Shown: in pieces, positions 21,943-55,520 of the stretch
Layout: each line of letters starts with the position of its first letter
Numbering within the stretch: the first letter of the stretch is position 1
Assembly: GCF_016433145.1 (NCBI RefSeq)
Contig: NC_058132.1
Span: 511,426,811-511,490,810, forward strand
DNA length: 64,000 nucleotides
From: Gracilinanus agilis
Lineage: Eukaryota
Reading direction: 5' to 3'
Notes under the pieces: model-generated
What the model saw: only the letters and a program-made list of their open reading frames with translations
Told to the model about the DNA's origin: nothing
Database searches by the model: none
Position numbers and translations under genes: made by a program

Positions 21943-23352
21943 ATGGATCCAAGAGATTTACTGGAAAACCTCAAGGCAGATCTGACTTGCTCTATCTGCC
22001 TGGGCTACTTCACAGACCCAGTGACTGTCAGTTGTGGCCATAGCTTTTGCACAGTCTGCCTTCTGAGGTGCAGGGGAGAAGCAGAGTCAACATTCCACTG
22101 CCCAGAATGCAGAGGAATCATCGAAGAAGATGATGTGTTGCCTAATAGGAATTTGCAGACTATGTCTGTCACTGGCAAAAGGCTCAGACCTCATCTGCTT
22201 CAGAGCATTGTGGACCTGTCTGTGTGTCATAAACATGGGGAGAAAGAGAAGCTCTTCTGTGAAGAAGACCAGAGACTTCTCTGTGGTTCCTGTTCATTAT
22301 CCCCAGGGCACAAGGACCACAGAGTCCTTCCCCTGCAAATGGCTGCTGACAAGTGCAGGGACAAGATCAAGCACACCCTGAATAACTTACAACGAAAAAA
22401 AGAAGAATTTAATGTTGCCTTGGACAGAGCGGCCAGGAGAGAGGCACTCTGTGACAAGGCTATACACTCTTTGAAACAATCTTTTATTTCAGAATACAGG
22501 AAAGTACATGAATTCTTATGGGAGGAAGAAGAGCTCTATCTACAAAGACTAGACCAGCAATACACAGACATCTTGGCAAAACTGGAGCTCAACAAGACCA
22601 AACTGTCTCAACAGATTGAAAATCTGGAAAGAATGCAATTAGAAGTAGAGGACAATTTGGAGAAGGGGCCCTTGGAAATGCTCCAAGATGTGAAAGGCAC
22701 TTTGGAAAGGCATGAGGAGCTGCTACTTCAAGAACCAGAGGTTATTTCCCTTGCCTGGGCCACCAGCCCCATCACTGGCTTGAGAGAGATGCTCATGAGA
22801 TTCCAGAGTGACATCAGTCTTGATCCTGAATCAGCCCATCCACATCTCATCCTGTCTGAAGATCTGAAGAGTGTCAAGTATGGAGATGTCCCACGGGACC
22901 TGCCTGACAACCAGCAAAGGTTCGATAGTGCTCCTGCTGTACTGGGGGACCAGACCTTCACTTCAGGCAAACACTATTGGGAGGTGAAAGTAGGAAATAA
23001 AACAGCTTGGGAAGTGGGAATCTGTAAAGATCCGGTCAGGAGAAAGGGACAAGTCTCCTCATTATCTAAGGATGCATGGACCCTCGTCAGTCTGGGATCT
23101 CGATATCATTGCTTCCTCTGGAATTGTAAATATGGCATCCATAGGAGCGAGCCTATAGACAAAGTAGGCATTTTCCTCGATTATGATAAAAGACATATAG
23201 CATTTTATGATGCCATAGACGGATCCTTAATTTCTAGTTTCTCAGACATGGTCTTTGAAGGGCCTCTTCGCCCTTACTTTTCTCCTTGCTGTCCTAATGG
23301 AGAAAGTACTCAAGGGTCAATTATGCTAATTGATGTGGGAGATTCTCACTGA
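21943..23352 (+). CDS. TRIM E3 ligase, gene A (RING, B-box2, CC, PRY/SPRY; TRIM60/75-like), intronless CDS, 469 aa
   Basis: Intact C3HC4 RING (CSIC..CGHSFC..C..CPEC), B-box2 (CHKH..FC..D..LLCGSC..H..H) and PRY/SPRY (LDPESAHPHL, GKHYWEV, VGIFLDYD, GPLRPYF). Confidence 0.97.
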   Translation: MDPRDLLENLKADLTCSICLGYFTDPVTVSCGHSFCTVCLLRCRGEAESTFHCPECRGIIEEDDVLPNRNLQTMSVTGKRLRPHLLQSIVDLSVCHKHGEKEKLFCEEDQRLLCGSCSLSPGHKDHRVLPLQMAADKCRDKIKHTLNNLQRKKEEFNVALDRAARREALCDKAIHSLKQSFISEYRKVHEFLWEEEELYLQRLDQQYTDILAKLELNKTKLSQQIENLERMQLEVEDNLEKGPLEMLQDVKGTLERHEELLLQEPEVISLAWATSPITGLREMLMRFQSDISLDPESAHPHLILSEDLKSVKYGDVPRDLPDNQQRFDSAPAVLGDQTFTSGKHYWEVKVGNKTAWEVGICKDPVRRKGQVSSLSKDAWTLVSLGSRYHCFLWNCKYGIHRSEPIDKVGIFLDYDKRHIAFYDAIDGSLISSFSDMVFEGPLRPYFSPCCPNGESTQGSIMLIDVGDSH

Positions 23353-23456
23353 GGAGTGAATGACAATGACTTGAAAGTGACTTTCTCTTCATTTCAACTT
23401 GTGTTAAAATGGACAACGGTAATTGTGTAAAATTGTTAAACCCTATAGAGAATAAA

Positions 23457-23900
23457 TCTGAACAAATTTTGGATATAATTGTATGAAATACTTTTGTGCC
23501 ATAACAAATTACTGAAGATAATGATTAAAAAAAACTGGAAAATTTTGTATAAAGTTCAGGAAAGTGAAGTGAGCAGAACTAAGAGAATACTGCACAGAAT
23601 GACATTTAATATACCATGAAAAGCTATTGTCAATATTACAAATGCTCAAGTACAACTCCAAAGGACTCATGATGAAGAAACGAATTTTACTGCCAAAGGA
23701 GAAACCCAGTGGGTCTGAATGCAGTTTGAAACACACCATTCTTCACTTTACTACCCCAATGAATTCTTCTTTATCTTGTAAACAGTAAGTTTCTTTTTTT
23801 CACAACATGATGAACATATATTTATGAAATATATATTTATGCATCCTATATTATATTACCTGTCTTCTTGGAGAAGGGTGGTAGAGAGGTGTATTAAAAG
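23457..23900 (+). mobile_element. L1 3' fragment just downstream of the gene (repeated at +8042 x3; older homologue at 55600-56050)
   Basis: ctgaacaaattttgg...gaaagtgaagtgagcagaact resembles the L1 ORF2 C-terminus and 3' UTR. Confidence 0.7.
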
Positions 23901-26188
23901 AACGAGATAAAGATTTTTGGACAAAACTCATTTGTGAATTTTTTCCCTTGGATAAAAGGGTTTATAATTATTTATTACATATTTATAACAAATCTTGTAT
24001 TATTACTGTTATAAATAAAAATAAAAAAGTGTTAGTTAAAAAATAATACAGTTTATTTTGTTTACTTGGAGCAGAAGAGCAAAGAAGGAAGCAAAGGAGC
24101 AGGAGTGAGTAGGAGAGAAGAAGGAGGGGGAGGAGAGATGAAGAGGGAAGAGTAGAGAAGAAGGAGGGGGTTAGGGGAGACAGAAAAGAAATAGGTGAGA
24201 AGGACTGAGGAGAGAAAAAAAGTTGCAAAAATTTTCAAGCACAGAAGTATGAAGAGAGAGATGAAAAAATGCTAAATGAATAAATAAATATTCATTTCAA
24301 TCGATGTTGAAATTGTCAATAAAGTTGAGCTTGATCATCAAAACCAAATAAAATAAAGTATTTAATTTATATTTGATAATTTTGAAAATGGGAGTTTTTT
24401 TTCTAATTAACATTATGATGATCCACAAACATTTAATTTGCAGATCAGGTATAAAGGGAGGCTGAAAAAAACATGAATGAAGGTGGGGGAAAGGGAGGTA
24501 AAAACGTTTTAAAAATAGAGACTGAGGAAGAGGGAGATGAAAGAATGCTGAATGAATGAACAAATGAATGAATGAGGGAATGATTCCTTTCAATGACCTC
24601 CTTGGGAGATTGGTATGGAAAAGTGATGTTTCTGAGTGAGATACAACACAAAATGAGGATCATAGCTGCCTCAAGGGACTTCTACCGGATCAGGACAGAG
24701 AAGATTTCTAAAGAAATAAATATATTATCAAAAAGTATATTAAATAAGAATCACAAAAGATAAGGGAAGAGTAGGTAACTGAGGCAAGATATTTTATGAA
24801 ATAAACTTTATTACTACTTTCTGTTATGGTGGCTTCTCCTTTTCAATCTTCCCCTCCATCTTTTCAGAGAGCTCTGACATCTGACATCATAGGAGACATT
24901 TCACTGTCACTATATCTCTAATGAAAAAACAGGTATTTTCTACACATTCTCCATTGGCTAGAAAGCCTAAAAGACACTCATCTTTGTTTTGAAGTTCCTG
25001 GATGTGAACAACATTGTGAATGACTAGACACATTATTGTGAATAAGAAGGGGAAGGGAGGGGAGGGGAGAACTCTATCCCTTTATAGAGACTAGAAGCAC
25101 TAAAGGGCTTAAGAATTCTCGGATTTAGAAAAAGGACTAAAGGAAAGAGTTTAAAGGGTGAAATTACAAAAAAAAAAAAAAGGGTAACATAAAATAAATT
25201 AAAAAACCTTTTTTTCTGCTACAACTCTGAGGAAAGTGCTAGCCTTATCTTTGATGAGTAGGATATCAGAGAAGAAAGAAATAAGAATTAAATTTCTCTT
25301 TAAAGAAAGTTAATTTTTAAAAGATTTTTTCATTCATATAATTAGTAACTACCACCACCATAAAAAACATTTAAATAAAAGAATGGATGAAAAATTATAT
25401 GCAAAAGCACAATTTCTACATTGTTCACAATTTGTCAAAATATGTAAATTATATGTGTTAATATAAACATCTGTGTTTGAGTTCCCTTTAGATTTGTTTT
25501 ACTTTGATACTTTTTTCTCTTGGCTTTGTAGCTCTTTGGTTCTTAATGTAACCATCGTATTATTATTAATCTTTATTCTTCTCTTTTCATCTCTTCATAT
25601 ATTTTCCTTATTTTCTTTATATTTCCAATATTTGTCATTTCTAATAAAATAATAGAATCTATTACATTAAAATATCACAATCTATTCAGCCATTTCTCCC
25701 AATCATTGCAACTGTGTTATCCCTAGTTATTTTGTCCTTACAAACAAAGCTTCCATAAACATTTTTATACATGCACAATTTTTTAGCTTCTCAATAATTC
25801 CCTTAAGGCCTAATCCAGGTAATGGGATCTCTAATGAGCATGAGCAACTTTACAGCTCTTAGTGTATATTTCCATCTTGTTTTCTAAAAAACAACTTACA
25901 GTTGATATAGCAATGTAATATTAGGTATGGTTCCACATGTTCCTATACCCATTTAATTTGATCAATTTAACCTGTCTTATTCTCAGTTAATATGCATCCC
26001 CAGGGCCATATTTAGCTAGATTGGTCCTTGGGCAGAAGGTACAATCTGTTTCCAGATCCATACTCTTTCCAAAACCAAGTGTTTTCTAGCTTGGTCATAC
26101 CTAGTAGAACATTTTTTTCCAATGCCACAATCCCTCAGAAGTACAAGATTACCTCCATTGTATGTTGAGTGTTGAAGTAAGAATTTTA

Positions 26189-26400
26189 GGGGCAGCTGGG
26201 TGGCTCAGTGGATTGAAAGCCAGGCCTAAAGATGGGAGGTCCTAGGTTCAAATCTGTTCTTAGACACTTCCTTAGCTATATGACTCTGGGCAAGTCACTT
26301 AACCCCCATGGCATAGCCTTTACCACTCTTCTGCCTTGTAACCAATGCACAGTATTGATTCTAAGATGGAAGGTAAAGGTTTCAAAATAAAAGAAAATTT
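26189..26400 (+). mobile_element. Marsupial SINE in the repeat unit (also 34231, 42273, 50315)
   Basis: ggggcagctgggtggctcagtgg...ggaaggtaaaggtttcaaaataaaa. Confidence 0.9.
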
Positions 26401-26529
26401 AAAAAAGAAAGACTTTTGCAGAATGTTTATGCTCTCTAAACCATTGTTGTCTCACCAGAAACTATGTTAGGATTCTGTGTATACTCAGTCTTACTCCTAG
26501 CCACCTGCAGGTATGTGGGAAGTGATCAG

Positions 26530-27301
26530 TGTAAGAATTTAAAATTTAGGTTTCATGTTAATGTGAGAATTCTATAGTAATTTTGGGGTCACTGATTTCA
26601 AGATATTATAACTGAAGTAAAGATGACCTTTAGTAGCTTTATTTACAAATAGATGGAATGAATGAAAGTTGGAAAATGTAAGAAGAAGATAAAGAATTAT
26701 CTAGCTTAGCACCCTAAGTGCTGCTCTAGTGTGGGGCTCAGCTCCAGCAAGGGCTTCACCATGTCCCTTGACCCCACTTGGATTTTCCAGTAATTCTCAG
26801 CCAGAAGTCTGTTGGTGTCCTCAGAAAGGGTTATACCAATGCAACCTCCTCCAGGAAAGGCAGGTCTTTCTGGAACCAATCTATCCAGAAGCCAGGAAAG
26901 GAAGGCCAGCTTCTCCACCCACCCCAGGGGAGGTCATCTAACACTGAAGTCCAAAGGAGAAGATCCAGGAGCAGTCTTCTAAGAAGTAGTCCAAGAGCCA
27001 AAGTCCCAGCTCAAAGTGAAGCCAAAGTCTAAAAGTCCCTTGCACAGGATCTCCAGGACTTTTTACAGTCCTTTTTACCATGTCTCTTCCAGTCCCTTCC
27101 TCCACTTTACAGGAACCAACTGCAGCCTTTCAATTTGCCTAGCACTGCCCAGGAACAGGGCAGTGGCCTCTGAAGTTGACACCCACTTTAGCAAGTGGCT
27201 TGGGAACTTAATTAGTGTTAAGTAGGAGTGCTTAAGTTTTTGACTGATTAACTTAAAAACTGTTGATTGATAGACAAAGAAAGTTTGATTCCCTCTTCAC
27301 A
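26530..27301 (-). mobile_element. Solo LTR in the repeat unit (also 34572, 42614, 50656)
   Basis: TGTAAG...TTCACA; TSD tcag/ccag; minus-strand AATAAA near 26641; absent at the paralogous site near 14255; resembles 62860-63444. Confidence 0.85.
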
Positions 27302-27552
27302 CCAGATAGACATCATATTTAACTTACCTCTGATTCTATTTAATTCCTTAACTCTTTATTTATTTTTTGGTTATATTTAACTAGTTCTGAGAAGGGAAAA
27401 TTAAAGTCCCCCAATATGATTATTTTCTTATCTATTTCAATCTTTATCTCATTTCATTTTTTCCTTAAAAAAATCTGGAAACAATTACCTATGCTGCCAA
27501 CAATTCCAATATTGGTAATGCTTCATTATCCATAGTACCTCTTACATAAGAC

Positions 27553-28950: not shown

Positions 28951-29758
28951 GGGGCTTAGACACTTGAGGATAGGTTTCATTAAGTAGATGTGAAGGAAAG
29001 TAAGTAAATATATAAGAGATTTATGAATTCATTTATTAGCAAAATTATTTTGCACGTGGAAATGTATGTTCTTTTTGGTTTTGTAAAATTTGGAATAAAA
29101 ATTTGATGGCCCTGAGTAAGACACCAGAAAAAATGAGGACACTAGAAGCCTAAAGGAACTTCTACTGAATTAGAAAATTTATCTAAAGAAATAATTGTAT
29201 TATGAAAAATTATATGAAATAAGACCAACAGATCAATAGATGGTAGGGAATAGATAAGATATTTTATAAAATGAAATTTTATTGCTACCTTCTGTTTTCA
29301 TATCTTTTTTCCCAATTTAGAACTTCCTTTGAATCTTTTTAGACAACTATCACATCAAAGAAGCAATTTTAAAAAATATTAATGCTGTTTCTATACCTAT
29401 AATTAAAAAGGTGATAATTTCCATGCAATCCCCACTGGCTAGAAAGATGAAAGTGCAAGAATGGTTTCCTCTAAACTGCCAATCTGGGAACACCAATGTG
29501 AATCTTCAGGTCCATCATTGATGGTTTTTTTTTAAAAAAAGGAAAATTTCAGAACACTGTTCTTTTGCAGAGACAAGAAGCAGTGACAAACATAGGAGTT
29601 CTTAGCTTTGGAGAGAGGGAGTAAAGGGAAAAGCTCAAAGAATGAAGGTGCAAAAAAAGGCAGACTAAACTGGGGATCTTTGTTAATAGTAATAAGAAGA
29701 AAAGGGTTTGTTTGGTTTTTCCCCAAGAGGTGGCAATGGTGAATTGCTGGATAAGAAG

Positions 29759-29868
29759 AAAGGTGAGAAGTCAGCCCTAAAGCAGAGGCTGAAGCACTAT
29801 CAAAACATGAGTTCTCACCTTTTGTGGGTGGAGTCAAGGGAGGAGCTACCAAAGACAGACATATAAAA
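29759..29868 (+). promoter_or_regulatory. Putative B-type promoter (also 37801, 45843, 53885)
   Basis: TATAAAA at 29862, about 120 bp before the ATG; gggtggag; 14/15 inverted repeat. Confidence 0.5.
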
Positions 29869-29984
29869 AGACACCTCACAACTGGGTCCTGGTGTCTTTG
29901 GCTGCCAGATCCCAAGGGAGAAAGGCAGGCATTATCTCTCCTGGAAGGAATATCTGAGAAGGAAGGAATCAGAAGCCTGGGAGC

Positions 29985-31394
29985 ATGGATCCAAGAGATT
30001 TGCTGGAAAACCTCAAGACAGATCTGACTTGCTCTATCTGCCTGGGCTACTTCACAGACCCAGTGACTGTCAGTTGTGGCCATAGCTTTTGCACAGTCTG
30101 CCTTCTGAGGTGCAGGGGAGAAGCAGAGTCAACATTCCACTGCCCAGAATGCAGAGGAATCATCGAAGAAGATGATGTGTTGCCTAATAGGAATTTGCAG
30201 ACTGTGTCTGTCACTGGCAAAAGGCTCAGACCTCATCTGCTTCAGAGCATTGTGGACCTGTCTGTGTGTCATAAACATGGGGAGAAAGAGAAGCTCTTCT
30301 GTGAAGAAGACCAGAGACTTCTCTGTGGTTCCTGTTCATTATCCCCAGGGCACAAGGACCACAGAGTCCTTCCCCTGAAAATGGCTGCTGACAAGTGCAG
30401 GGACAAGATCAAGCACACCCTGAATAACTTACAACGAAAAAAAGAAGAATTTAATGTTGCCTTGGACAGAGCGGCCAGGAGAGAGGCACTCTGTGACAAG
30501 GCTATACACTCTTTGAAACAATCTTTTATTTCAGAATACAGGAAAGTACATGAATTCTTATGGGAGGAAGAAGAGCTCTATCTACAAAGACTAGACCAGC
30601 AATACACAGACATCTTGGCAAAACTGGAGCTCAACAAGACCAAACTGTCTCAACAGATTGAAAATCTGGAAAGAATGCAATTAGAAGTAGAGGACAATTT
30701 GGAGAAGGGGCCCTTGGAAATGCTCCAAGATGTGAAAGGCACTTTGGAAAGGCATGAGGAGCTGCTACTTCAAGAACCAGAGGTTATTTCCCTTGCCTGG
30801 GCCACCAGCCCCATCACTGGCTTGAGAGAGATGCTCATGAGATTCCAGAGTGACATCAGTCTTGATCCTGAATCAGCCCATCCACATCTCATCCTGTCTG
30901 AAGATCTGAAGAGTGTCAAGTATGGAGATGTCCCACGGGACCTGCCTGACAACCAGCAAAGGTTCGATAGTGCTCCTGCTGTACTGGGGGACCAGACCTT
31001 CACTTCAGGCAAACACTATTGGGAGGTGAAAGTAGGAAATAAAACAGCTTGGGAAGTGGGAATCTGTAAAGATCCGGTCAGGAGAAAGGGACAAGTCTCC
31101 TCATTATCTAAGGATGCATGGACCCTCGTCAGTCTGGGATCTCGATATCATTGCTTCCTCTGGAATTGTAAATATGGCATCCATAGGAGCGAGCCTATAG
31201 ACAAAGTAGGCATTTTCCTCGATTATGATAAAAGACATATAGCATTTTATGATGCCATAGACGGATCCTTAATTTCTAGTTTCTCAGACATGGTCTTTGA
31301 AGGGCCTCTTCGCCCTTACTTTTCTCCTTGCTGTCCTAATGGAGAAAGTACTCAAGGGTCAATTATGCTAATTGATGTGGGAGATTCTCACTGA
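29985..31394 (+). CDS. Chimeric TRIM copy 1 (B N-terminus, A SPRY), 469 aa
   Basis: Carries T12/V74/K132 like gene B; SPRY identical to gene A. Confidence 0.95.
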   Translation: MDPRDLLENLKTDLTCSICLGYFTDPVTVSCGHSFCTVCLLRCRGEAESTFHCPECRGIIEEDDVLPNRNLQTVSVTGKRLRPHLLQSIVDLSVCHKHGEKEKLFCEEDQRLLCGSCSLSPGHKDHRVLPLKMAADKCRDKIKHTLNNLQRKKEEFNVALDRAARREALCDKAIHSLKQSFISEYRKVHEFLWEEEELYLQRLDQQYTDILAKLELNKTKLSQQIENLERMQLEVEDNLEKGPLEMLQDVKGTLERHEELLLQEPEVISLAWATSPITGLREMLMRFQSDISLDPESAHPHLILSEDLKSVKYGDVPRDLPDNQQRFDSAPAVLGDQTFTSGKHYWEVKVGNKTAWEVGICKDPVRRKGQVSSLSKDAWTLVSLGSRYHCFLWNCKYGIHRSEPIDKVGIFLDYDKRHIAFYDAIDGSLISSFSDMVFEGPLRPYFSPCCPNGESTQGSIMLIDVGDSH

Positions 31395-34300
31395 GGAGTG
31401 AATGACAATGACTTGAAAGTGACTTTCTCTTCATTTCAACTTGTGTTAAAATGGACAACGGTAATTGTGTAAAATTGTTAAACCCTATAGAGAATAAATC
31501 TGAACAAATTTTGGATATAATTGTATGAAATACTTTTGTGCCATAACAAATTACTGAAGATAATGATTAAAAAAAACTGGAAAATTTTGTATAAAGTTCA
31601 GGAAAGTGAAGTGAGCAGAACTAAGAGAATACTGCACAGAATGACATTTAATATACCATGAAAAGCTATTGTCAATATTACAAATGCTCAAGTACAACTC
31701 CAAAGGACTCATGATGAAGAAACGAATTTTACTGCCAAAGGAGAAACCCAGTGGGTCTGAATGCAGTTTGAAACACACCATTCTTCACTTTACTACCCCA
31801 ATGAATTCTTCTTTATCTTGTAAACAGTAAGTTTCTTTTTTTCACAACATGATGAACATATATTTATGAAATATATATTTATGCATCCTATATTATATTA
31901 CCTGTCTTCTTGGAGAAGGGTGGTAGAGAGGTGTATTAAAAGAACGAGATAAAGATTTTTGGACAAAACTCATTTGTGAATTTTTTCCCTTGGATAAAAG
32001 GGTTTATAATTATTTATTACATATTTATAACAAATCTTGTATTATTACTGTTATAAATAAAAATAAAAAAGTGTTAGTTAAAAAATAATACAGTTTATTT
32101 TGTTTACTTGGAGCAGAAGAGCAAAGAAGGAAGCAAAGGAGCAGGAGTGAGTAGGAGAGAAGAAGGAGGGGGAGGAGAGATGAAGAGGGAAGAGTAGAGA
32201 AGAAGGAGGGGGTTAGGGGAGACAGAAAAGAAATAGGTGAGAAGGACTGAGGAGAGAAAAAAAGTTGCAAAAATTTTCAAGCACAGAAGTATGAAGAGAG
32301 AGATGAAAAAATGCTAAATGAATAAATAAATATTCATTTCAATCGATGTTGAAATTGTCAATAAAGTTGAGCTTGATCATCAAAACCAAATAAAATAAAG
32401 TATTTAATTTATATTTGATAATTTTGAAAATGGGAGTTTTTTTTCTAATTAACATTATGATGATCCACAAACATTTAATTTGCAGATCAGGTATAAAGGG
32501 AGGCTGAAAAAAACATGAATGAAGGTGGGGGAAAGGGAGGTAAAAACGTTTTAAAAATAGAGACTGAGGAAGAGGGAGATGAAAGAATGCTGAATGAATG
32601 AACAAATGAATGAATGAGGGAATGATTCCTTTCAATGACCTCCTTGGGAGATTGGTATGGAAAAGTGATGTTTCTGAGTGAGATACAACACAAAATGAGG
32701 ATCATAGCTGCCTCAAGGGACTTCTACCGGATCAGGACAGAGAAGATTTCTAAAGAAATAAATATATTATCAAAAAGTATATTAAATAAGAATCACAAAA
32801 GATAAGGGAAGAGTAGGTAACTGAGGCAAGATATTTTATGAAATAAACTTTATTACTACTTTCTGTTATGGTGGCTTCTCCTTTTCAATCTTCCCCTCCA
32901 TCTTTTCAGAGAGCTCTGACATCTGACATCATAGGAGACATTTCACTGTCACTATATCTCTAATGAAAAAACAGGTATTTTCTACACATTCTCCATTGGC
33001 TAGAAAGCCTAAAAGACACTCATCTTTGTTTTGAAGTTCCTGGATGTGAACAACATTGTGAATGACTAGACACATTATTGTGAATAAGAAGGGGAAGGGA
33101 GGGGAGGGGAGAACTCTATCCCTTTATAGAGACTAGAAGCACTAAAGGGCTTAAGAATTCTCGGATTTAGAAAAAGGACTAAAGGAAAGAGTTTAAAGGG
33201 TGAAATTACAAAAAAAAAAAAAAGGGTAACATAAAATAAATTAAAAAACCTTTTTTTCTGCTACAACTCTGAGGAAAGTGCTAGCCTTATCTTTGATGAG
33301 TAGGATATCAGAGAAGAAAGAAATAAGAATTAAATTTCTCTTTAAAGAAAGTTAATTTTTAAAAGATTTTTTCATTCATATAATTAGTAACTACCACCAC
33401 CATAAAAAACATTTAAATAAAAGAATGGATGAAAAATTATATGCAAAAGCACAATTTCTACATTGTTCACAATTTGTCAAAATATGTAAATTATATGTGT
33501 TAATATAAACATCTGTGTTTGAGTTCCCTTTAGATTTGTTTTACTTTGATACTTTTTTCTCTTGGCTTTGTAGCTCTTTGGTTCTTAATGTAACCATCGT
33601 ATTATTATTAATCTTTATTCTTCTCTTTTCATCTCTTCATATATTTTCCTTATTTTCTTTATATTTCCAATATTTGTCATTTCTAATAAAATAATAGAAT
33701 CTATTACATTAAAATATCACAATCTATTCAGCCATTTCTCCCAATCATTGCAACTGTGTTATCCCTAGTTATTTTGTCCTTACAAACAAAGCTTCCATAA
33801 ACATTTTTATACATGCACAATTTTTTAGCTTCTCAATAATTCCCTTAAGGCCTAATCCAGGTAATGGGATCTCTAATGAGCATGAGCAACTTTACAGCTC
33901 TTAGTGTATATTTCCATCTTGTTTTCTAAAAAACAACTTACAGTTGATATAGCAATGTAATATTAGGTATGGTTCCACATGTTCCTATACCCATTTAATT
34001 TGATCAATTTAACCTGTCTTATTCTCAGTTAATATGCATCCCCAGGGCCATATTTAGCTAGATTGGTCCTTGGGCAGAAGGTACAATCTGTTTCCAGATC
34101 CATACTCTTTCCAAAACCAAGTGTTTTCTAGCTTGGTCATACCTAGTAGAACATTTTTTTCCAATGCCACAATCCCTCAGAAGTACAAGATTACCTCCAT
34201 TGTATGTTGAGTGTTGAAGTAAGAATTTTAGGGGCAGCTGGGTGGCTCAGTGGATTGAAAGCCAGGCCTAAAGATGGGAGGTCCTAGGTTCAAATCTGTT

Positions 34301-38026: not shown

Positions 38027-39436
38027 ATGGATCCAAGAGATTTGCTGGAAAACCTCAAGACAGATCTGACTTGCTCTATCTGCCTGGGCTACTTCACAGA
38101 CCCAGTGACTGTCAGTTGTGGCCATAGCTTTTGCACAGTCTGCCTTCTGAGGTGCAGGGGAGAAGCAGAGTCAACATTCCACTGCCCAGAATGCAGAGGA
38201 ATCATCGAAGAAGATGATGTGTTGCCTAATAGGAATTTGCAGACTGTGTCTGTCACTGGCAAAAGGCTCAGACCTCATCTGCTTCAGAGCATTGTGGACC
38301 TGTCTGTGTGTCATAAACATGGGGAGAAAGAGAAGCTCTTCTGTGAAGAAGACCAGAGACTTCTCTGTGGTTCCTGTTCATTATCCCCAGGGCACAAGGA
38401 CCACAGAGTCCTTCCCCTGAAAATGGCTGCTGACAAGTGCAGGGACAAGATCAAGCACACCCTGAATAACTTACAACGAAAAAAAGAAGAATTTAATGTT
38501 GCCTTGGACAGAGCGGCCAGGAGAGAGGCACTCTGTGACAAGGCTATACACTCTTTGAAACAATCTTTTATTTCAGAATACAGGAAAGTACATGAATTCT
38601 TATGGGAGGAAGAAGAGCTCTATCTACAAAGACTAGACCAGCAATACACAGACATCTTGGCAAAACTGGAGCTCAACAAGACCAAACTGTCTCAACAGAT
38701 TGAAAATCTGGAAAGAATGCAATTAGAAGTAGAGGACAATTTGGAGAAGGGGCCCTTGGAAATGCTCCAAGATGTGAAAGGCACTTTGGAAAGGCATGAG
38801 GAGCTGCTACTTCAAGAACCAGAGGTTATTTCCCTTGCCTGGGCCACCAGCCCCATCACTGGCTTGAGAGAGATGCTCATGAGATTCCAGAGTGACATCA
38901 GTCTTGATCCTGAATCAGCCCATCCACATCTCATCCTGTCTGAAGATCTGAAGAGTGTCAAGTATGGAGATGTCCCACGGGACCTGCCTGACAACCAGCA
39001 AAGGTTCGATAGTGCTCCTGCTGTACTGGGGGACCAGACCTTCACTTCAGGCAAACACTATTGGGAGGTGAAAGTAGGAAATAAAACAGCTTGGGAAGTG
39101 GGAATCTGTAAAGATCCGGTCAGGAGAAAGGGACAAGTCTCCTCATTATCTAAGGATGCATGGACCCTCGTCAGTCTGGGATCTCGATATCATTGCTTCC
39201 TCTGGAATTGTAAATATGGCATCCATAGGAGCGAGCCTATAGACAAAGTAGGCATTTTCCTCGATTATGATAAAAGACATATAGCATTTTATGATGCCAT
39301 AGACGGATCCTTAATTTCTAGTTTCTCAGACATGGTCTTTGAAGGGCCTCTTCGCCCTTACTTTTCTCCTTGCTGTCCTAATGGAGAAAGTACTCAAGGG
39401 TCAATTATGCTAATTGATGTGGGAGATTCTCACTGA
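38027..39436 (+). CDS. Chimeric TRIM copy 2, 469 aa
   Basis: Translation identical to 29985..31394. Confidence 0.93.
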   Translation: MDPRDLLENLKTDLTCSICLGYFTDPVTVSCGHSFCTVCLLRCRGEAESTFHCPECRGIIEEDDVLPNRNLQTVSVTGKRLRPHLLQSIVDLSVCHKHGEKEKLFCEEDQRLLCGSCSLSPGHKDHRVLPLKMAADKCRDKIKHTLNNLQRKKEEFNVALDRAARREALCDKAIHSLKQSFISEYRKVHEFLWEEEELYLQRLDQQYTDILAKLELNKTKLSQQIENLERMQLEVEDNLEKGPLEMLQDVKGTLERHEELLLQEPEVISLAWATSPITGLREMLMRFQSDISLDPESAHPHLILSEDLKSVKYGDVPRDLPDNQQRFDSAPAVLGDQTFTSGKHYWEVKVGNKTAWEVGICKDPVRRKGQVSSLSKDAWTLVSLGSRYHCFLWNCKYGIHRSEPIDKVGIFLDYDKRHIAFYDAIDGSLISSFSDMVFEGPLRPYFSPCCPNGESTQGSIMLIDVGDSH

Positions 39437-46068: not shown

Positions 46069-47478
46069 ATGGATCCAAGAGATTTGCTGGAAAACCTCAA
46101 GACAGATCTGACTTGCTCTATCTGCCTGGGCTACTTCACAGACCCAGTGACTGTCAGTTGTGGCCATAGCTTTTGCACAGTCTGCCTTCTGAGGTGCAGG
46201 GGAGAAGCAGAGTCAACATTCCACTGCCCAGAATGCAGAGGAATCATCGAAGAAGATGATGTGTTGCCTAATAGGAATTTGCAGACTGTGTCTGTCACTG
46301 GCAAAAGGCTCAGACCTCATCTGCTTCAGAGCATTGTGGACCTGTCTGTGTGTCATAAACATGGGGAGAAAGAGAAGCTCTTCTGTGAAGAAGACCAGAG
46401 ACTTCTCTGTGGTTCCTGTTCATTATCCCCAGGGCACAAGGACCACAGAGTCCTTCCCCTGAAAATGGCTGCTGACAAGTGCAGGGACAAGATCAAGCAC
46501 ACCCTGAATAACTTACAACGAAAAAAAGAAGAATTTAATGTTGCCTTGGACAGAGCGGCCAGGAGAGAGGCACTCTGTGACAAGGCTATACACTCTTTGA
46601 AACAATCTTTTATTTCAGAATACAGGAAAGTACATGAATTCTTATGGGAGGAAGAAGAGCTCTATCTACAAAGACTAGACCAGCAATACACAGACATCTT
46701 GGCAAAACTGGAGCTCAACAAGACCAAACTGTCTCAACAGATTGAAAATCTGGAAAGAATGCAATTAGAAGTAGAGGACAATTTGGAGAAGGGGCCCTTG
46801 GAAATGCTCCAAGATGTGAAAGGCACTTTGGAAAGGCATGAGGAGCTGCTACTTCAAGAACCAGAGGTTATTTCCCTTGCCTGGGCCACCAGCCCCATCA
46901 CTGGCTTGAGAGAGATGCTCATGAGATTCCAGAGTGACATCAGTCTTGATCCTGAATCAGCCCATCCACATCTCATCCTGTCTGAAGATCTGAAGAGTGT
47001 CAAGTATGGAGATGTCCCACGGGACCTGCCTGACAACCAGCAAAGGTTCGATAGTGCTCCTGCTGTACTGGGGGACCAGACCTTCACTTCAGGCAAACAC
47101 TATTGGGAGGTGAAAGTAGGAAATAAAACAGCTTGGGAAGTGGGAATCTGTAAAGATCCGGTCAGGAGAAAGGGACAAGTCTCCTCATTATCTAAGGATG
47201 CATGGACCCTCGTCAGTCTGGGATCTCGATATCATTGCTTCCTCTGGAATTGTAAATATGGCATCCATAGGAGCGAGCCTATAGACAAAGTAGGCATTTT
47301 CCTCGATTATGATAAAAGACATATAGCATTTTATGATGCCATAGACGGATCCTTAATTTCTAGTTTCTCAGACATGGTCTTTGAAGGGCCTCTTCGCCCT
47401 TACTTTTCTCCTTGCTGTCCTAATGGAGAAAGTACTCAAGGGTCAATTATGCTAATTGATGTGGGAGATTCTCACTGA
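46069..47478 (+). CDS. Chimeric TRIM copy 3, 469 aa
   Basis: Translation identical to 29985..31394. Confidence 0.93.
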   Translation: MDPRDLLENLKTDLTCSICLGYFTDPVTVSCGHSFCTVCLLRCRGEAESTFHCPECRGIIEEDDVLPNRNLQTVSVTGKRLRPHLLQSIVDLSVCHKHGEKEKLFCEEDQRLLCGSCSLSPGHKDHRVLPLKMAADKCRDKIKHTLNNLQRKKEEFNVALDRAARREALCDKAIHSLKQSFISEYRKVHEFLWEEEELYLQRLDQQYTDILAKLELNKTKLSQQIENLERMQLEVEDNLEKGPLEMLQDVKGTLERHEELLLQEPEVISLAWATSPITGLREMLMRFQSDISLDPESAHPHLILSEDLKSVKYGDVPRDLPDNQQRFDSAPAVLGDQTFTSGKHYWEVKVGNKTAWEVGICKDPVRRKGQVSSLSKDAWTLVSLGSRYHCFLWNCKYGIHRSEPIDKVGIFLDYDKRHIAFYDAIDGSLISSFSDMVFEGPLRPYFSPCCPNGESTQGSIMLIDVGDSH

Positions 47479-50400
47479 GGAGTGAATGACAATGACTTGA
47501 AAGTGACTTTCTCTTCATTTCAACTTGTGTTAAAATGGACAACGGTAATTGTGTAAAATTGTTAAACCCTATAGAGAATAAATCTGAACAAATTTTGGAT
47601 ATAATTGTATGAAATACTTTTGTGCCATAACAAATTACTGAAGATAATGATTAAAAAAAACTGGAAAATTTTGTATAAAGTTCAGGAAAGTGAAGTGAGC
47701 AGAACTAAGAGAATACTGCACAGAATGACATTTAATATACCATGAAAAGCTATTGTCAATATTACAAATGCTCAAGTACAACTCCAAAGGACTCATGATG
47801 AAGAAACGAATTTTACTGCCAAAGGAGAAACCCAGTGGGTCTGAATGCAGTTTGAAACACACCATTCTTCACTTTACTACCCCAATGAATTCTTCTTTAT
47901 CTTGTAAACAGTAAGTTTCTTTTTTTCACAACATGATGAACATATATTTATGAAATATATATTTATGCATCCTATATTATATTACCTGTCTTCTTGGAGA
48001 AGGGTGGTAGAGAGGTGTATTAAAAGAACGAGATAAAGATTTTTGGACAAAACTCATTTGTGAATTTTTTCCCTTGGATAAAAGGGTTTATAATTATTTA
48101 TTACATATTTATAACAAATCTTGTATTATTACTGTTATAAATAAAAATAAAAAAGTGTTAGTTAAAAAATAATACAGTTTATTTTGTTTACTTGGAGCAG
48201 AAGAGCAAAGAAGGAAGCAAAGGAGCAGGAGTGAGTAGGAGAGAAGAAGGAGGGGGAGGAGAGATGAAGAGGGAAGAGTAGAGAAGAAGGAGGGGGTTAG
48301 GGGAGACAGAAAAGAAATAGGTGAGAAGGACTGAGGAGAGAAAAAAAGTTGCAAAAATTTTCAAGCACAGAAGTATGAAGAGAGAGATGAAAAAATGCTA
48401 AATGAATAAATAAATATTCATTTCAATCGATGTTGAAATTGTCAATAAAGTTGAGCTTGATCATCAAAACCAAATAAAATAAAGTATTTAATTTATATTT
48501 GATAATTTTGAAAATGGGAGTTTTTTTTCTAATTAACATTATGATGATCCACAAACATTTAATTTGCAGATCAGGTATAAAGGGAGGCTGAAAAAAACAT
48601 GAATGAAGGTGGGGGAAAGGGAGGTAAAAACGTTTTAAAAATAGAGACTGAGGAAGAGGGAGATGAAAGAATGCTGAATGAATGAACAAATGAATGAATG
48701 AGGGAATGATTCCTTTCAATGACCTCCTTGGGAGATTGGTATGGAAAAGTGATGTTTCTGAGTGAGATACAACACAAAATGAGGATCATAGCTGCCTCAA
48801 GGGACTTCTACCGGATCAGGACAGAGAAGATTTCTAAAGAAATAAATATATTATCAAAAAGTATATTAAATAAGAATCACAAAAGATAAGGGAAGAGTAG
48901 GTAACTGAGGCAAGATATTTTATGAAATAAACTTTATTACTACTTTCTGTTATGGTGGCTTCTCCTTTTCAATCTTCCCCTCCATCTTTTCAGAGAGCTC
49001 TGACATCTGACATCATAGGAGACATTTCACTGTCACTATATCTCTAATGAAAAAACAGGTATTTTCTACACATTCTCCATTGGCTAGAAAGCCTAAAAGA
49101 CACTCATCTTTGTTTTGAAGTTCCTGGATGTGAACAACATTGTGAATGACTAGACACATTATTGTGAATAAGAAGGGGAAGGGAGGGGAGGGGAGAACTC
49201 TATCCCTTTATAGAGACTAGAAGCACTAAAGGGCTTAAGAATTCTCGGATTTAGAAAAAGGACTAAAGGAAAGAGTTTAAAGGGTGAAATTACAAAAAAA
49301 AAAAAAAGGGTAACATAAAATAAATTAAAAAACCTTTTTTTCTGCTACAACTCTGAGGAAAGTGCTAGCCTTATCTTTGATGAGTAGGATATCAGAGAAG
49401 AAAGAAATAAGAATTAAATTTCTCTTTAAAGAAAGTTAATTTTTAAAAGATTTTTTCATTCATATAATTAGTAACTACCACCACCATAAAAAACATTTAA
49501 ATAAAAGAATGGATGAAAAATTATATGCAAAAGCACAATTTCTACATTGTTCACAATTTGTCAAAATATGTAAATTATATGTGTTAATATAAACATCTGT
49601 GTTTGAGTTCCCTTTAGATTTGTTTTACTTTGATACTTTTTTCTCTTGGCTTTGTAGCTCTTTGGTTCTTAATGTAACCATCGTATTATTATTAATCTTT
49701 ATTCTTCTCTTTTCATCTCTTCATATATTTTCCTTATTTTCTTTATATTTCCAATATTTGTCATTTCTAATAAAATAATAGAATCTATTACATTAAAATA
49801 TCACAATCTATTCAGCCATTTCTCCCAATCATTGCAACTGTGTTATCCCTAGTTATTTTGTCCTTACAAACAAAGCTTCCATAAACATTTTTATACATGC
49901 ACAATTTTTTAGCTTCTCAATAATTCCCTTAAGGCCTAATCCAGGTAATGGGATCTCTAATGAGCATGAGCAACTTTACAGCTCTTAGTGTATATTTCCA
50001 TCTTGTTTTCTAAAAAACAACTTACAGTTGATATAGCAATGTAATATTAGGTATGGTTCCACATGTTCCTATACCCATTTAATTTGATCAATTTAACCTG
50101 TCTTATTCTCAGTTAATATGCATCCCCAGGGCCATATTTAGCTAGATTGGTCCTTGGGCAGAAGGTACAATCTGTTTCCAGATCCATACTCTTTCCAAAA
50201 CCAAGTGTTTTCTAGCTTGGTCATACCTAGTAGAACATTTTTTTCCAATGCCACAATCCCTCAGAAGTACAAGATTACCTCCATTGTATGTTGAGTGTTG
50301 AAGTAAGAATTTTAGGGGCAGCTGGGTGGCTCAGTGGATTGAAAGCCAGGCCTAAAGATGGGAGGTCCTAGGTTCAAATCTGTTCTTAGACACTTCCTTA

Positions 50401-53400
50401 GCTATATGACTCTGGGCAAGTCACTTAACCCCCATGGCATAGCCTTTACCACTCTTCTGCCTTGTAACCAATGCACAGTATTGATTCTAAGATGGAAGGT
50501 AAAGGTTTCAAAATAAAAGAAAATTTAAAAAAGAAAGACTTTTGCAGAATGTTTATGCTCTCTAAACCATTGTTGTCTCACCAGAAACTATGTTAGGATT
50601 CTGTGTATACTCAGTCTTACTCCTAGCCACCTGCAGGTATGTGGGAAGTGATCAGTGTAAGAATTTAAAATTTAGGTTTCATGTTAATGTGAGAATTCTA
50701 TAGTAATTTTGGGGTCACTGATTTCAAGATATTATAACTGAAGTAAAGATGACCTTTAGTAGCTTTATTTACAAATAGATGGAATGAATGAAAGTTGGAA
50801 AATGTAAGAAGAAGATAAAGAATTATCTAGCTTAGCACCCTAAGTGCTGCTCTAGTGTGGGGCTCAGCTCCAGCAAGGGCTTCACCATGTCCCTTGACCC
50901 CACTTGGATTTTCCAGTAATTCTCAGCCAGAAGTCTGTTGGTGTCCTCAGAAAGGGTTATACCAATGCAACCTCCTCCAGGAAAGGCAGGTCTTTCTGGA
51001 ACCAATCTATCCAGAAGCCAGGAAAGGAAGGCCAGCTTCTCCACCCACCCCAGGGGAGGTCATCTAACACTGAAGTCCAAAGGAGAAGATCCAGGAGCAG
51101 TCTTCTAAGAAGTAGTCCAAGAGCCAAAGTCCCAGCTCAAAGTGAAGCCAAAGTCTAAAAGTCCCTTGCACAGGATCTCCAGGACTTTTTACAGTCCTTT
51201 TTACCATGTCTCTTCCAGTCCCTTCCTCCACTTTACAGGAACCAACTGCAGCCTTTCAATTTGCCTAGCACTGCCCAGGAACAGGGCAGTGGCCTCTGAA
51301 GTTGACACCCACTTTAGCAAGTGGCTTGGGAACTTAATTAGTGTTAAGTAGGAGTGCTTAAGTTTTTGACTGATTAACTTAAAAACTGTTGATTGATAGA
51401 CAAAGAAAGTTTGATTCCCTCTTCACACCAGATAGACATCATATTTAACTTACCTCTGATTCTATTTAATTCCTTAACTCTTTATTTATTTTTTGGTTAT
51501 ATTTAACTAGTTCTGAGAAGGGAAAATTAAAGTCCCCCAATATGATTATTTTCTTATCTATTTCAATCTTTATCTCATTTCATTTTTTCCTTAAAAAAAT
51601 CTGGAAACAATTACCTATGCTGCCAACAATTCCAATATTGGTAATGCTTCATTATCCATAGTACCTCTTACATAAGACTTATGTTCTTTGCTTTCTGTCA
51701 TTGTCCCTTTAGCCTTGAGTAATTCCTCATACTGAGTTTCCATTCTATCTAGTTTAGTCTCTAGATAGTTCACTTTTAACTTTAGGTCAGTCTTTGCAGG
51801 AGCTTGCTTGATATCTGCTTTTAAATGTTTAAAAACAACTGCCAAAGATTCAATCATTATGCAATCAGGGATATCTGGTGCCCAGGTTGCAGACACAGCT
51901 ATTCTGTCTGCAGACTGTAGTGGTATCCTTGGGGATACAAGCTGTGGGGCTCAGCAAACAAAGTGAGATTGCTAATCCTGTCCTCTGGGGTTGCCTTGTT
52001 GATTCCACTAAAATATGATCAAAATGGATACATGAACTAGACATAAAAGGAGATATAAGGAATTTAGAAGAATAGGGAGCATGTTACCAATCAGATGTAT
52101 GGATAAGAAAGGAATTGATGAGCCAAAGATATGAAAAACTTTATGAAATATAAAAAGGACAATTCTGAGTTCATTAAATTTAAAAGGTTTTGTATAAATA
52201 AAACAAATTTTGCCAAGATCAGAAAGCAGAAAATGGAGGAAGAATTTTATAAACAGCCCCTCCGATAGAGGCCTCATATGTTGAAAACAGTGCCAAATTC
52301 ATAAGAATAAGAGCAATCCTCCATTTGATAACTGAATAGGAACAGACAATTTTTGGATGAAGAAATCAAAGCCATATTCAGGTCTTTGAAAAAATGCTCT
52401 AACTCACTACTGTCTCGAGCAGTGATGGGCAAACTACAGCCCACAGGCCAGATGTAGTCCCCTGAAATGTTCTGCCCTGCCTCAACATTATTCCTAATCT
52501 GACCAATACAATGAGTAGGATACAATACAGTGAAACTTTGAAAGAGTTGCCTTAGAAAGAGACTGACAGATGAGCATTTCCTTCCTTTTGGCCCCCTCTT
52601 TAAAAAGTTTGCCCATCACTGGTTTAGAGAAATGTAAACCAAAACAATTCTGAAATATAACCTCACACACACCAGGAAGGCTACAATGACACAAGGGCAA
52701 AATGACCAATGTTGGAAGAGATGTGGAAAAAATGGGGCCATTAATATGCATTTTGGGGGGCTGAGAACTAATCTAACCACATTCAAGAACAACCAAATGG
52801 TTAACCAAATGTTGGTATATTATTATGATGGAATACCTCTGTCCCATGAGAAAGGATGAGCAGTCTAATTAGGAAAAAAAATGGAAAGAATTATCCAGGA
52901 TGATGAACAGTGAAATGAGCATAACCAGGAGAATATAATATACAGTGGAAGAATTAATACTGGAAGAATAACTTGTGAATGTTACCTTCATAGAGTGAAC
53001 TGAAAGGTGAAAATGTGAAAGACTTAATTCCTATGAACATATTGCTCTCCCAGCTGTGATGTGGGGAGGATAGGCAGGGGCTTAGACACTTGAGGATAGG
53101 TTTCATTAAGTAGATGTGAAGGAAAGTAAGTAAATATATAAGAGATTTATGAATTCATTTATTAGCAAAATTATTTTGCACGTGGAAATGTATGTTCTTT
53201 TTGGTTTTGTAAAATTTGGAATAAAAATTTGATGGCCCTGAGTAAGACACCAGAAAAAATGAGGACACTAGAAGCCTAAAGGAACTTCTACTGAATTAGA
53301 AAATTTATCTAAAGAAATAATTGTATTATGAAAAATTATATGAAATAAGACCAACAGATCAATAGATGGTAGGGAATAGATAAGATATTTTATAAAATGA

Positions 53401-54110
53401 AATTTTATTGCTACCTTCTGTTTTCATATCTTTTTTCCCAATTTAGAACTTCCTTTGAATCTTTTTAGACAACTATCACATCAAAGAAGCAATTTTAAAA
53501 AATATTAATGCTGTTTCTATACCTATAATTAAAAAGGTGATAATTTCCATGCAATCCCCACTGGCTAGAAAGATGAAAGTGCAAGAATGGTTTCCTCTAA
53601 ACTGCCAATCTGGGAACACCAATGTGAATCTTCAGGTCCATCATTGATGGTTTTTTTTTAAAAAAAGGAAAATTTCAGAACACTGTTCTTTTGCAGAGAC
53701 AAGAAGCAGTGACAAACATAGGAGTTCTTAGCTTTGGAGAGAGGGAGTAAAGGGAAAAGCTCAAAGAATGAAGGTGCAAAAAAAGGCAGACTAAACTGGG
53801 GATCTTTGTTAATAGTAATAAGAAGAAAAGGGTTTGTTTGGTTTTTCCCCAAGAGGTGGCAATGGTGAATTGCTGGATAAGAAGAAAGGTGAGAAGTCAG
53901 CCCTAAAGCAGAGGCTGAAGCACTATCAAAACATGAGTTCTCACCTTTTGTGGGTGGAGTCAAGGGAGGAGCTACCAAAGACAGACATATAAAAAGACAC
54001 CTCACAACTGGGTCCTGGTGTCTTTGGCTGCCAGATCCCAAGGGAGAAAGGCAGGCATTATCTCTCCTGGAAGGAATATCTGAGAAGGAAGGAATCAGAA
54101 GCCTGGGAGC

Positions 54111-55520
54111 ATGGATCCAAGAGATTTGCTGGAAAACCTCAAGACAGATCTGACTTGCTCTATCTGCCTGGGCTACTTCACAGACCCAGTGACTGTCAGT
54201 TGTGGCCATAGCTTTTGCACAGTCTGCCTTCTGAGGTGCAGGGGAGAAGCAGAGTCAACATTCCACTGCCCAGAATGCAGAGGAATCATCGAAGAAGATG
54301 ATGTGTTGCCTAATAGGAATTTGCAGACTGTGTCTGTCACTGGCAAAAGGCTCAGACCTCATCTGCTTCAGAGCATTGTGGACCTGTCTGTGTGTCATAA
54401 ACATGGGGAGAAAGAGAAGCTCTTCTGTGAAGAAGACCAGAGACTTCTCTGTGGTTCCTGTTCATTATCCCCAGGGCACAAGGACCACAGAGTCCTTCCC
54501 CTGAAAATGGCTGCTGACAAGTGCAGGGACAAGATCAAGCACACCCTGAATAACTTACAACGAAAAAAAGAAGAATTTAATGTTGCCTTGGACAGAGCGG
54601 CCAGGAGAGAGGCACTCTGTGACAAGGCTATACACTCTTTGAAACAATCTTTTATTTCAGAATACAGGAAAGTACATGAATTCTTATGGGAGGAAGAAGA
54701 GCTCTATCTACAAAGACTAGACCAGCAATACACAGACATCTTGGCAAAACTGGAGCTCAACAAGACCAAACTGTCTCAACAGATTGAAAATCTGGAAAGA
54801 ATGCAATTAGAAGTAGAGGACAATTTGGAGAAGGGGCCCTTGGAAATGCTCCAAGATGTGAAAGGCACTTTGGAAAGGCATGAGGAGCTGCTACTTCAAG
54901 AACCAGAGGTTATTTCCCTTGCCTGGGCCACCAGCCCCATCACTGGCTTGAGAGAGATGCTCATGAAATTCCAGAGGGATATCAGTCTTGATCCTGATTC
55001 AGCCCATCCACATCTCATCCTGTCTGAAGATCTGAAGAGTGTCAAGTATGGAGATGTCCCACAGGAGGTTCCTGACAACCAGGAAAGGTTTGATTATGCT
55101 CTTGCTGTACTGGGGGCCCAAAGCTTCACTTCAGGTAAACACTATTGGGAGGTTAAAGTAGGAGATAAGACAGTGTGGAAACTGGGAGTCTGTAAAGATT
55201 CAATCAGGAGAAAAGGTCAACCATCCCCATTATGTGAGGAAGTATGGTACCTAATAAGCCTCAGATATGGAAAGAATTACTTTCTCTTGAATTCTAAAGG
55301 TGGAATTAATCAGAGCCAGCCTATAAAGAAAGTGGGAATTTTCCTGGATTATGATAAAAGACATGTCGCATTTTATGATGCCATAGAGGGATCCTTACTT
55401 TGTAGTTTCTCAGAAATGACCTTTGAAGGGTCTCTTCGTCCTTACTTCTCTCTTTGCTGTCAGAAAGAAGAAAGTACTCCTGTGTCAATTATGATAACTA
55501 ATATGGGAGATTCTCAGTGA
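54111..55520 (+). CDS. TRIM E3 ligase, gene B with divergent PRY/SPRY, 469 aa
   Basis: Same as the middle copies to codon 285, then about 57 of 184 residues differ with no indels or stops. Confidence 0.97.
   Translation: MDPRDLLENLKTDLTCSICLGYFTDPVTVSCGHSFCTVCLLRCRGEAESTFHCPECRGIIEEDDVLPNRNLQTVSVTGKRLRPHLLQSIVDLSVCHKHGEKEKLFCEEDQRLLCGSCSLSPGHKDHRVLPLKMAADKCRDKIKHTLNNLQRKKEEFNVALDRAARREALCDKAIHSLKQSFISEYRKVHEFLWEEEELYLQRLDQQYTDILAKLELNKTKLSQQIENLERMQLEVEDNLEKGPLEMLQDVKGTLERHEELLLQEPEVISLAWATSPITGLREMLMKFQRDISLDPDSAHPHLILSEDLKSVKYGDVPQEVPDNQERFDYALAVLGAQSFTSGKHYWEVKVGDKTVWKLGVCKDSIRRKGQPSPLCEEVWYLISLRYGKNYFLLNSKGGINQSQPIKKVGIFLDYDKRHVAFYDAIEGSLLCSFSEMTFEGSLRPYFSLCCQKEESTPVSIMITNMGDSQ

Follow-up and report, generated by a model that had tools for sequence, protein, structure and literature searches.

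A tandem group of TRIM genes in Gracilinanus agilis, the agile gracile mouse opossum, raises the question of whether recombination between two neighbouring paralogs has created a hybrid gene that was then multiplied between its parents, or whether the array was made by genome assembly. The window, i.e. the whole stretch of 64,000 nt analysed here from Gracilinanus agilis chromosome CM028237.1, contains no N and carries five intronless RING/B-box/coiled-coil/PRY-SPRY genes spaced at 8,042 bases (Table 1). The ORFs of all five are intact at 469 aa, and each has Pfam matches to RING, B-box, PRY and SPRY. The outer genes are referred to as A and B, the middle type of protein as M and the spacer as S.

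By domain order (RBCC plus PRY/SPRY) the genes are class-IV TRIM genes, for which E3-ligase activity is predicted. The RING region (residues 16–56) matches both zf-C3HC4_4 and zf-RING_UBOX, and its zinc ligands C16, C19, C31, H33, C36, C39, C53 and C56 are all invariant in 35 homologs. A zf-B_box match at residues 93–131 scores 35.9 bits (cut-off 24.1), and PRY (291–339, E 2e-20) and SPRY (343–449, E 1e-18) are found in A and B types alike. In a monomeric AlphaFold model, the coiled coil is formed by helices 131–239 and 243–261, with a pLDDT mostly of 63–90 in this block; the SPRY side is poorly modelled, with pLDDT below 50 over 272–336. The best named matches are Monodelphis proteins (71–77% identical). 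The array shares its length, domain order, intronless structure, tandem arrangement and homologous spacer with the marsupial paralogs named 'probable E3 ubiquitin-protein ligase TRIML1'. However, the array proteins are only 43–45% identical to eutherian TRIML1, and the name of the matches derives from automatic NCBI annotation. Eutherian TRIML1 is biased to gonad, embryo and placenta. Marsupials have many paralogs of this kind; one marsupial TRIML1 ortholog group has been recognised and tandem opossum copies were treated cautiously (PMC6993854).

Comparison of the window sequence with itself gave s[i] = s[i+8042] for all i from 22337 to 46924. The 8,042-bp repeat had been described as beginning inside a gene, and this exact period was confirmed in the assembly, as was the identity in all five genes of the 462-bp tract H, which recurs at +8042, +16084, +24126 and +32168. 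Copies 2–4 are 100% identical in the assembled sequence, as are the four spacers. Chance as the origin of the repeat is ruled out, as 24 kb of exact periodicity is not random. Apart from a weak Gag_p30 match upstream of A, the spacer ORFs have no Pfam match, and neither has a 183-aa antisense ORF across the gene starts; both were treated as non-genes.

Table 1. Features of the TRIM array and its surroundings (positions in the window)
Feature	Position	Strand	Remarks
psi0, frameshifted TRIML1-like pseudogene	9541..10830	+	Stands at the head of an older array unit
A's own upstream region	21458..21834	+	Old paralog of the b/B upstream region, 76–92% identity, with indels
A tract matching unplaced-contig paralog L004	21844..22182	+	339 bp, single difference; holds 9 of 10 A-specific alleles
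Gene A	21943..23352	+	469 aa, intact RBCC-PRY/SPRY; annotated as a gene in GCA_016433145.1
H, tract common to the five genes	22337..22798	+	462 bp; codons 132–285, coiled coil and linker
Perfectly periodic block	22337..54966	+	4 x 8,042 bp + 462 bp = (H-a3'-S-b5')x4, then H
Middle gene 1	29985..31394	+	b 5' alleles with A-type SPRY
Middle gene 2	38027..39436	+	Same sequence as middle gene 1
Middle gene 3	46069..47478	+	Same sequence as middle gene 1
Gene B	54111..55520	+	469 aa; first 285 residues as in the middle genes; PRY/SPRY protein 69% identical to A type
B-specific 3' half and about 780 bp of 3' flank	54967..56302	+	78.6% identical to A type
SPRY-only relic	63521..63874	+	42% aa identity to A residues 335–462

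The two outer copies each depart from the middle type on one side of the tract only. Copy 1 deviates only 5' of 22337. Within the gene its differences from copy 2 fall at 21960 (synonymous), 21976 (A12T), 22162 (M74V) and 22336 (Q132K), the four A-specific positions that had been listed in the preliminary description; upstream there are six more SNPs in 21852–21903, and indels farther away. Copy 5 deviates only 3' of 54966, and its first difference from copy 4 is at 54967 (equivalent to 22799), exactly where B-specific bases had been said to begin. The middle genes have the claimed marker pattern, i.e. B-type upstream DNA and 5' (N-terminal) alleles joined to an A-type SPRY and 3' flank. The upstream TATA-like box of A reads CATAAAAAG, and that of the b/B type reads TATAAAAAG. 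On the other side of B, homology of the 3' flank to the spacer stops at 56302.

Divergence between A and B differs sharply along the gene. Identity of A to the b/B type climbs from 76 to 92, 99 and 100% towards H and then falls to about 80% at 22799, and dS is 0.006 in codons 1–285 (residues 99% identical) versus 0.27 in codons 286–469. In the N-terminal tree A, M and B form one tight clade (100/99), and in the C-terminal tree the SPRYs of A and B stand no closer together than either does to Monodelphis paralogs. Pairs of Monodelphis paralogs display no such excess of N-terminal over C-terminal identity. For the SPRY, omega between A and B is 0.63 overall and 1.7 in the last ~44 codons, where sites are few (Fisher p=0.17), and no claim of positive selection is made. 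The tract of A that matches the paralog L004 is probably, from its near-identity, a gene-conversion tract shared by the two. As a second mosaic tract, it indicates that family members often exchange sequence here. Because 9/10 of the A markers lie within this tract, the limits of the crossover interval are less certain than had been claimed, and its left bound may be later than the crossover event itself.

The reading preferred here, with a probability of about 0.6, is that the array is real and that the middle genes would be anti-Lepore-type hybrids of A and B, produced by unequal crossover and followed by further exchange. The locus bears a NAHR signature of direct-orientation paralogs, a 462-bp identical tract, a junction in register and an intact frame, and the repeat unit is as long as the distance from A to B. 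The starting point would have been an old tandem array of intronless TRIML1-like genes, in which the neighbouring paralogs A and B had SPRYs with a silent-site divergence of ~27%. As a first step, gene conversion would have homogenised A and B over roughly 1 kb, starting just past the TATA box and reaching codon 285. Unequal crossing-over within the homogenised tract could next have given A-S-[b5'/a3']-S-B, after which 8 kb of perfect homology would permit more unequal exchange and copy number would rise. The outcome would be a higher dose of the ligase with the A-type SPRY, placed behind B promoter-proximal DNA, in a domain combination that is not new. An earlier suggestion that a 'SPRY swap' generates new combinations of E3 specificity was not upheld; the hybrid departs from protein A by three substitutions, since the N-terminal halves of A and B were 99% identical to begin with. 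What the sequence shows directly is the anatomy of the locus, the intact ORFs with their domains, the discordance between 5' and 3' divergence and the older array. We infer in what order the events took place, that a crossover was the mechanism, whether the genes have any expression or selective value, and how many copies of the hybrid exist, which may not be three.

How far the array can be trusted depends on how it was assembled. The genome was built from 2x100-bp stLFR linked reads with Supernova, GapCloser and Hi-C, without long reads, and has a contig N50 of 57 kb. Since H is 462 bp, the unit 8 kb and the reads 100 bp, no read links the b5' to the a3' markers or counts the units. The data fix only A5'-H-(a3'-S-b5'-H)^n-B3' with n of at least 1, and hybrids exist only if n is at least 2; a hybrid junction and a figure of three copies are known only from the assembler's output. 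What is confirmed is the arrangement of the five genes in the assembly, as distinct from the DNA of the animal. When the exact sequences of proteins A, M and B were looked up, they matched only this one assembly, with no second assembly or contig.

It is rather unlikely, without being far-fetched, that the animal carries A-S-B (n=1), or a unit count that differs from the assembled one, and that the middle 'hybrid' genes were manufactured. The A/B tract exceeds the read length, and this would create a de Bruijn cycle H-a3'-S-b5'-H, here walked four times. Such a loop is suggested by the use of short linked reads only, by the edges of the periodic block, which are exactly those of the shared tract, and by the fact that no copy has a private variant in 24 kb. 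A graph loop yields zero differences over that length whatever the truth, and perfect identity in a graph-based short-read assembly is no evidence of recency. The only figures derived from reads are the word shares in run X4, whose library type is unstated, of 0.59 and 0.67; modelled on 31-mer multiplicities, they display no clear repeat excess over the flank. Although n=1 fits best, its lead is under 1.2 log units, and 0 to 5 hybrid copies fit almost equally well, within about 1.2 log-likelihood units and with a slight lean to fewer. According to its authors, Supernova does not resolve cycles and writes them as one path, then Ns. That cycles go unresolved speaks for a loop; the rule for writing them tells against one, as it implies one traversal and 10 Ns, whereas four traversals and no N are seen here. 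GapCloser could erase the run of 10 Ns, yet it would not add loops, and no known step of the published pipeline adds loops without a coverage or length signal. Four loops without N thus hint at some signal for extra copies. Furthermore, TRIM clusters have often changed in copy number in recent times (PMC3228819). The proposal of an unequal crossover followed by amplification stands in part. The unit length, the in-register junction and the marker pattern argue for it; the junction and the three copies are seen only as the assembler wrote them, and the left bound is weakened by the L004-like tract.

The array also has an older history. Three pieces of psi0 in frames 1/3/1 have 52–70% identity to protein A (tblastn); its DNA is 76% identical to the TRIM genes, and homology to S extends over the 3' flank and spacer of psi0. 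The whole psi0-spacer0-A unit is homologous to A-S-next at 76–84%, and in Monodelphis a homologous gene-plus-spacer unit likewise lies in tandem. Judged by these homologies, the tandem array is older than the Gracilinanus–Monodelphis split, and the ancestral A-spacer-B order proposed earlier fits both the older unit and the Monodelphis ones. This age is also what would be expected if a real, old multi-copy array had been kept alike by concerted evolution (unequal exchange and conversion), the middle type then not being a young hybrid. The outer halves of A and B would have escaped, and the 5' end of A would later have been replaced by sequence from an L004-like paralog. In favour of this account, copies at the edges of a tandem array usually diverge, the A markers are mostly a conversion tract, and T12 of the b type is derived relative to Monodelphis and L004. 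Nevertheless, three whole 8-kb units would have to be homogenised until no difference was left, and duplication is the more parsimonious course, which makes concerted evolution a quite improbable account; its recombination mechanism is identical to that of the hybrid reading, and the two differ in timing only.

Anti-Lepore-type hybrids from unequal crossing-over of tandem paralogs are known from the beta/delta-globin genes, the red/green opsin arrays and CYP21A2/CYP21A1P. Hybrid origin of the middle genes would match these systems in the direct-repeat paralogs, the in-register crossover in a shared tract, the unit equal to the inter-gene distance, the union of the distal gene's 5' end with the proximal gene's 3' end, and the further exchange that alters copy number. 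It would differ in that the 5' halves of the two opossum parents already have 99% identity, the hybrid is nearly parent A and the case is known from one assembly. Among TRIM genes, the TRIM43/48/49/51/64 reservoir on primate chromosome 11 consists of young, copy-number-variable clusters formed by segmental duplication, in which 100%-identical copies were ascribed to gene conversion and a partial-gene conversion breakpoint was found (PMC3228819). Very recent tandem amplification would be common to both cases, with a fast-evolving B30.2/SPRY in the primate system (PMC3228819). In contrast, the primate genes are multi-exon, lie in larger segments and were validated by MLPA and several assemblies, whereas the opossum genes are intronless, in an 8-kb unit of one short-read assembly. 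The TRIM5/TRIM30 genes of rodents and cattle have likewise undergone lineage-specific tandem expansion, paralogs of one species clustering together through repeated duplication or gene conversion (PMC6677749, PMC2151084). Those genes belong to another TRIM subfamily, and no antiviral function has been shown for TRIML1-like genes. The mechanism and the behaviour of the gene family are already known, and the locus offers neither a new mechanism nor a new protein architecture.

If real, the array would be a clean, datable case of dose change in a cluster of TRIM innate-immunity or germline ligases, in which conversion first makes the homology that unequal crossover then exploits, and the first such description for a didelphid TRIML1-like array. 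It is a long shot that the amplification is not only real but very young, perhaps polymorphic, and that selection favoured extra A-type SPRY ligase from B's canonical-TATA promoter, e.g. against endogenous or exogenous retroviruses or in reproductive conflict; equally speculative is the separate idea that homogenised 5' modules starting at the transcription start recur in opossum TRIM paralogs. In practical terms, perfect multi-kb tandem copies in linked-short-read assemblies should not be equated with gene gains without depth or long-read checks. Absent from the preliminary description were the SPRY-only relic (no RBCC was detected upstream of it), psi0 with its older unit, and the short-read-only nature of the assembly.

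When the window, which contains 0 N, was searched for direct repeats and a period of 8,042 was tested base by base, s[i] = s[i+8042] held at all positions 22337-46924; 22337-54966 comprises four exact units of 8,042 bp and a further 462 bp. In all five ORFs (Table), Pfam matches to RING, B-box, PRY and SPRY exceed the curated cut-offs. The middle genes 2-4 (M), putative b/A hybrids, are identical to one another. Gene 1 (A) differs from them at 21960 (silent), 21976 (A12T), 22162 (M74V) and 22336 (Q132K), at six more SNPs within 21852-21903 and by indels farther upstream, while differences in gene 5 (B) start at 54967 and continue onward. The 462-bp tract common to all five genes (H, codons 132-285) is predicted to be coiled coil plus linker, because the AlphaFold model contains a 109-residue helix (131-239) and a second helix (243-261). 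The preliminary description had placed this interval in the coiled coil, in agreement with the model; every coordinate it gave proved correct in the period test and in the ORF and copy comparison, and its observations are confirmed for the assembly. Codon 132 (22336 and its equivalents) has three states among close paralogs, namely Q in A, K in b/B and E in both the unplaced contig L004 and Monodelphis. A 183-aa antisense ORF at 29532-30083 (-), with copies at +8042 steps, overlaps the starts of b/B-type genes and not that of A; it matched no Pfam family and probably arose by chance.

Table. Features of the window and of related loci
Feature	Position	Remarks
ORF 1 (A)	start 21943	469 aa
ORF 2 (M)	start 29985	469 aa
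ORF 3 (M)	start 38027	469 aa
ORF 4 (M)	start 46069	469 aa
ORF 5 (B)	start 54111	469 aa
psi0	9541-10830	Frameshifted TRIML1-like pseudogene, sixth family member
SPRY-only relic	63521-63874	42% aa identity to A SPRY; 74-80% nt identity to family SPRY regions
MLV integrase C-terminal domain ORF	2030-2494	Endogenous-retrovirus fragment, E 9e-13
Gag_p30 match	20711-21088	Endogenous-retrovirus fragment directly upstream of A; weak, E 0.005, under cut-off
L004	JADWME010058669.1, 6,041 bp	Unplaced contig in the same assembly; a further family unit (gene plus spacer), encodes P0011
L005, Monodelphis domestica	CM051230.1, 178,999,041-179,020,444	At least 4 tandem TRIML1-like genes ~5.4 kb apart, two clearly intronless

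With S for the spacer and a3' and b5' for the A-type 3' and B-type 5' parts, the assembled arrangement is A5'-H-(a3'-S-b5'-H)x4-B3', which is what unequal crossing-over of the anti-Lepore type classically yields from direct paralogs. Given a correct assembly, the most parsimonious reading of the sequence is that unequal crossing-over between A and B in an A-S-B ancestor would have generated this pattern, and that the identical 8-kb units would then promote more unequal exchange. The interpretation in the preliminary description is supported in part: it had proposed such an ancestor, which fits the older array discussed below, but went too far in proposing a new E3-specificity combination from a SPRY swap. 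The RBCC half is common to A and B, and thus the 'chimera' amounts to protein A with three substitutions. If real, it would alter how many doses of the A-type SPRY gene are present and which promoter-proximal DNA precedes them, TATAAAAAG in b/B versus CATAAAAAG in A.

Exact-protein matches assign the window to CM028237.1 (683.5 Mb) in GCA_016433145.1, the Gracilinanus agilis assembly. According to the genome paper, stLFR linked reads (BGISEQ 2x100 bp) were assembled with Supernova 2.1.1, without long reads; GapCloser filled gaps from short-insert reads, Hi-C provided the scaffolding, and contig N50 is 56.9 kb. None of the 100-bp reads can cross the 462-bp tract or the 8-kb unit, and barcodes cannot tell copies on one molecule apart. 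The graph therefore fixes just A5'-H-(a3'-S-b5'-H)^n-B3', with n≥1. A and B certainly exist, whereas the hybrids exist only if n≥2; the assembly set n=4. Perfect loop identity follows from this method and gives no age information; an older array held uniform by concerted evolution is considered improbable. A graph-loop artefact in an animal carrying only A-S-B would explain the loop identity. However, unresolved cycles are output as one path followed by Ns (Supernova paper), and the four loops here are free of N, which hints at some extra signal for copies; the artefact is a minority reading, though a weightier one than concerted evolution. In X4, the one well-matching sequencing run (3.2 Gb, 2021, library type unspecified), the shares of sampled words found in the run were 0.59 for 20500-25500 and 0.67 for 29900-31500. 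When a Poisson model compared these two shares with the window 31-mer multiplicities, 0-5 hybrid copies fitted within ~1.2 log units. An NAHR-type amplification (unequal crossover between paralogs) that is real, with an uncertain copy number, is favoured at a probability of about 0.58. Published work on primates already describes young TRIM clusters that vary in copy number, contain 100%-identical copies and show partial-gene conversion (PMC3228819), and work on rodents describes species-specific homogenisation or expansion of Trim5 (PMC6677749, PMC2151084); this locus, even if real, would be a further case of a well-known kind.

The five genes belong to an older array. The 3' flank and spacer of psi0 are homologous to those of A, and the 12-kb spacer after psi0 holds blocks 76-84% identical, in conserved order, to the 6.6-kb spacer S. 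The 3' flank of B is homologous to that of A over ~780 bp, then homology stops. The SPRY relic reaches the window end at the DNA level, and no RBCC part was found upstream of it. The nearest named proteins are 'TRIML1' predictions of Monodelphis and other marsupials, with 71-77% identity as against 43-45% for eutherian TRIML1. At the Monodelphis locus the genes are likewise intronless and arranged in tandem, 5.4 kb from one another, and the spacer is homologous; the array is therefore older than the split of these opossums, and didelphids inherited it in intronless tandem form from their ancestor.

Across 480 bp upstream, A and the b/B type become steadily more alike, from 76% to 92% identity; the value is 99-100% at 21835-22798 and then falls sharply to ~80%. 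Between A and B, silent sites diverge by 0.006 over codons 1-285 and by 0.27 over codons 286-469, where dN is 0.17 and omega 0.63. In the N-terminal-half tree, A, M and B form a single tight clade, whereas in the SPRY tree, a poorly resolved region, the A and B types are as near to Monodelphis paralogs as to each other. The A/B pair is 99% identical in the N-terminal and 69% in the C-terminal part. A general N-terminal excess is absent among the 28 Monodelphis paralog pairs (means 75.4% and 75.0%, with 14/28 pairs in each direction). Together, the discordant divergence, the trees and the Monodelphis pairs indicate that A and B are old paralogs with a recently homogenised 5' kilobase, most simply by gene conversion.

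L004 illustrates that the chromosome-level scaffolds left family members unplaced. Its spacer is shorter, its gene was called as a 341-aa partial, and its overall identity is ~82-88%. Over 21844-22182 it has one difference from A, and it carries 9 of the 10 'A-specific' alleles. Bases incompatible with L004 stand 21 bp from the A allele at 22162, so that A is truly mosaic at k-mer resolution. The preliminary description had confined the crossover to the 462-bp tract, but the left bound depends on an undated conversion tract and the single site 22336. Since the A/L004 tract holds nine of the ten A alleles, the exchange could lie at any point from about 21835 to 22798. The two homogenised tracts, A with b/B (21835-22798) and A with L004 (21844-22182), start ~10 bp apart (21829-21844 and unit equivalents), directly 3' of a TATA-like box, close to where transcription probably starts. 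The paired starts could mark a recombination hotspot, or conversion halting at the indel-rich upstream heterology.
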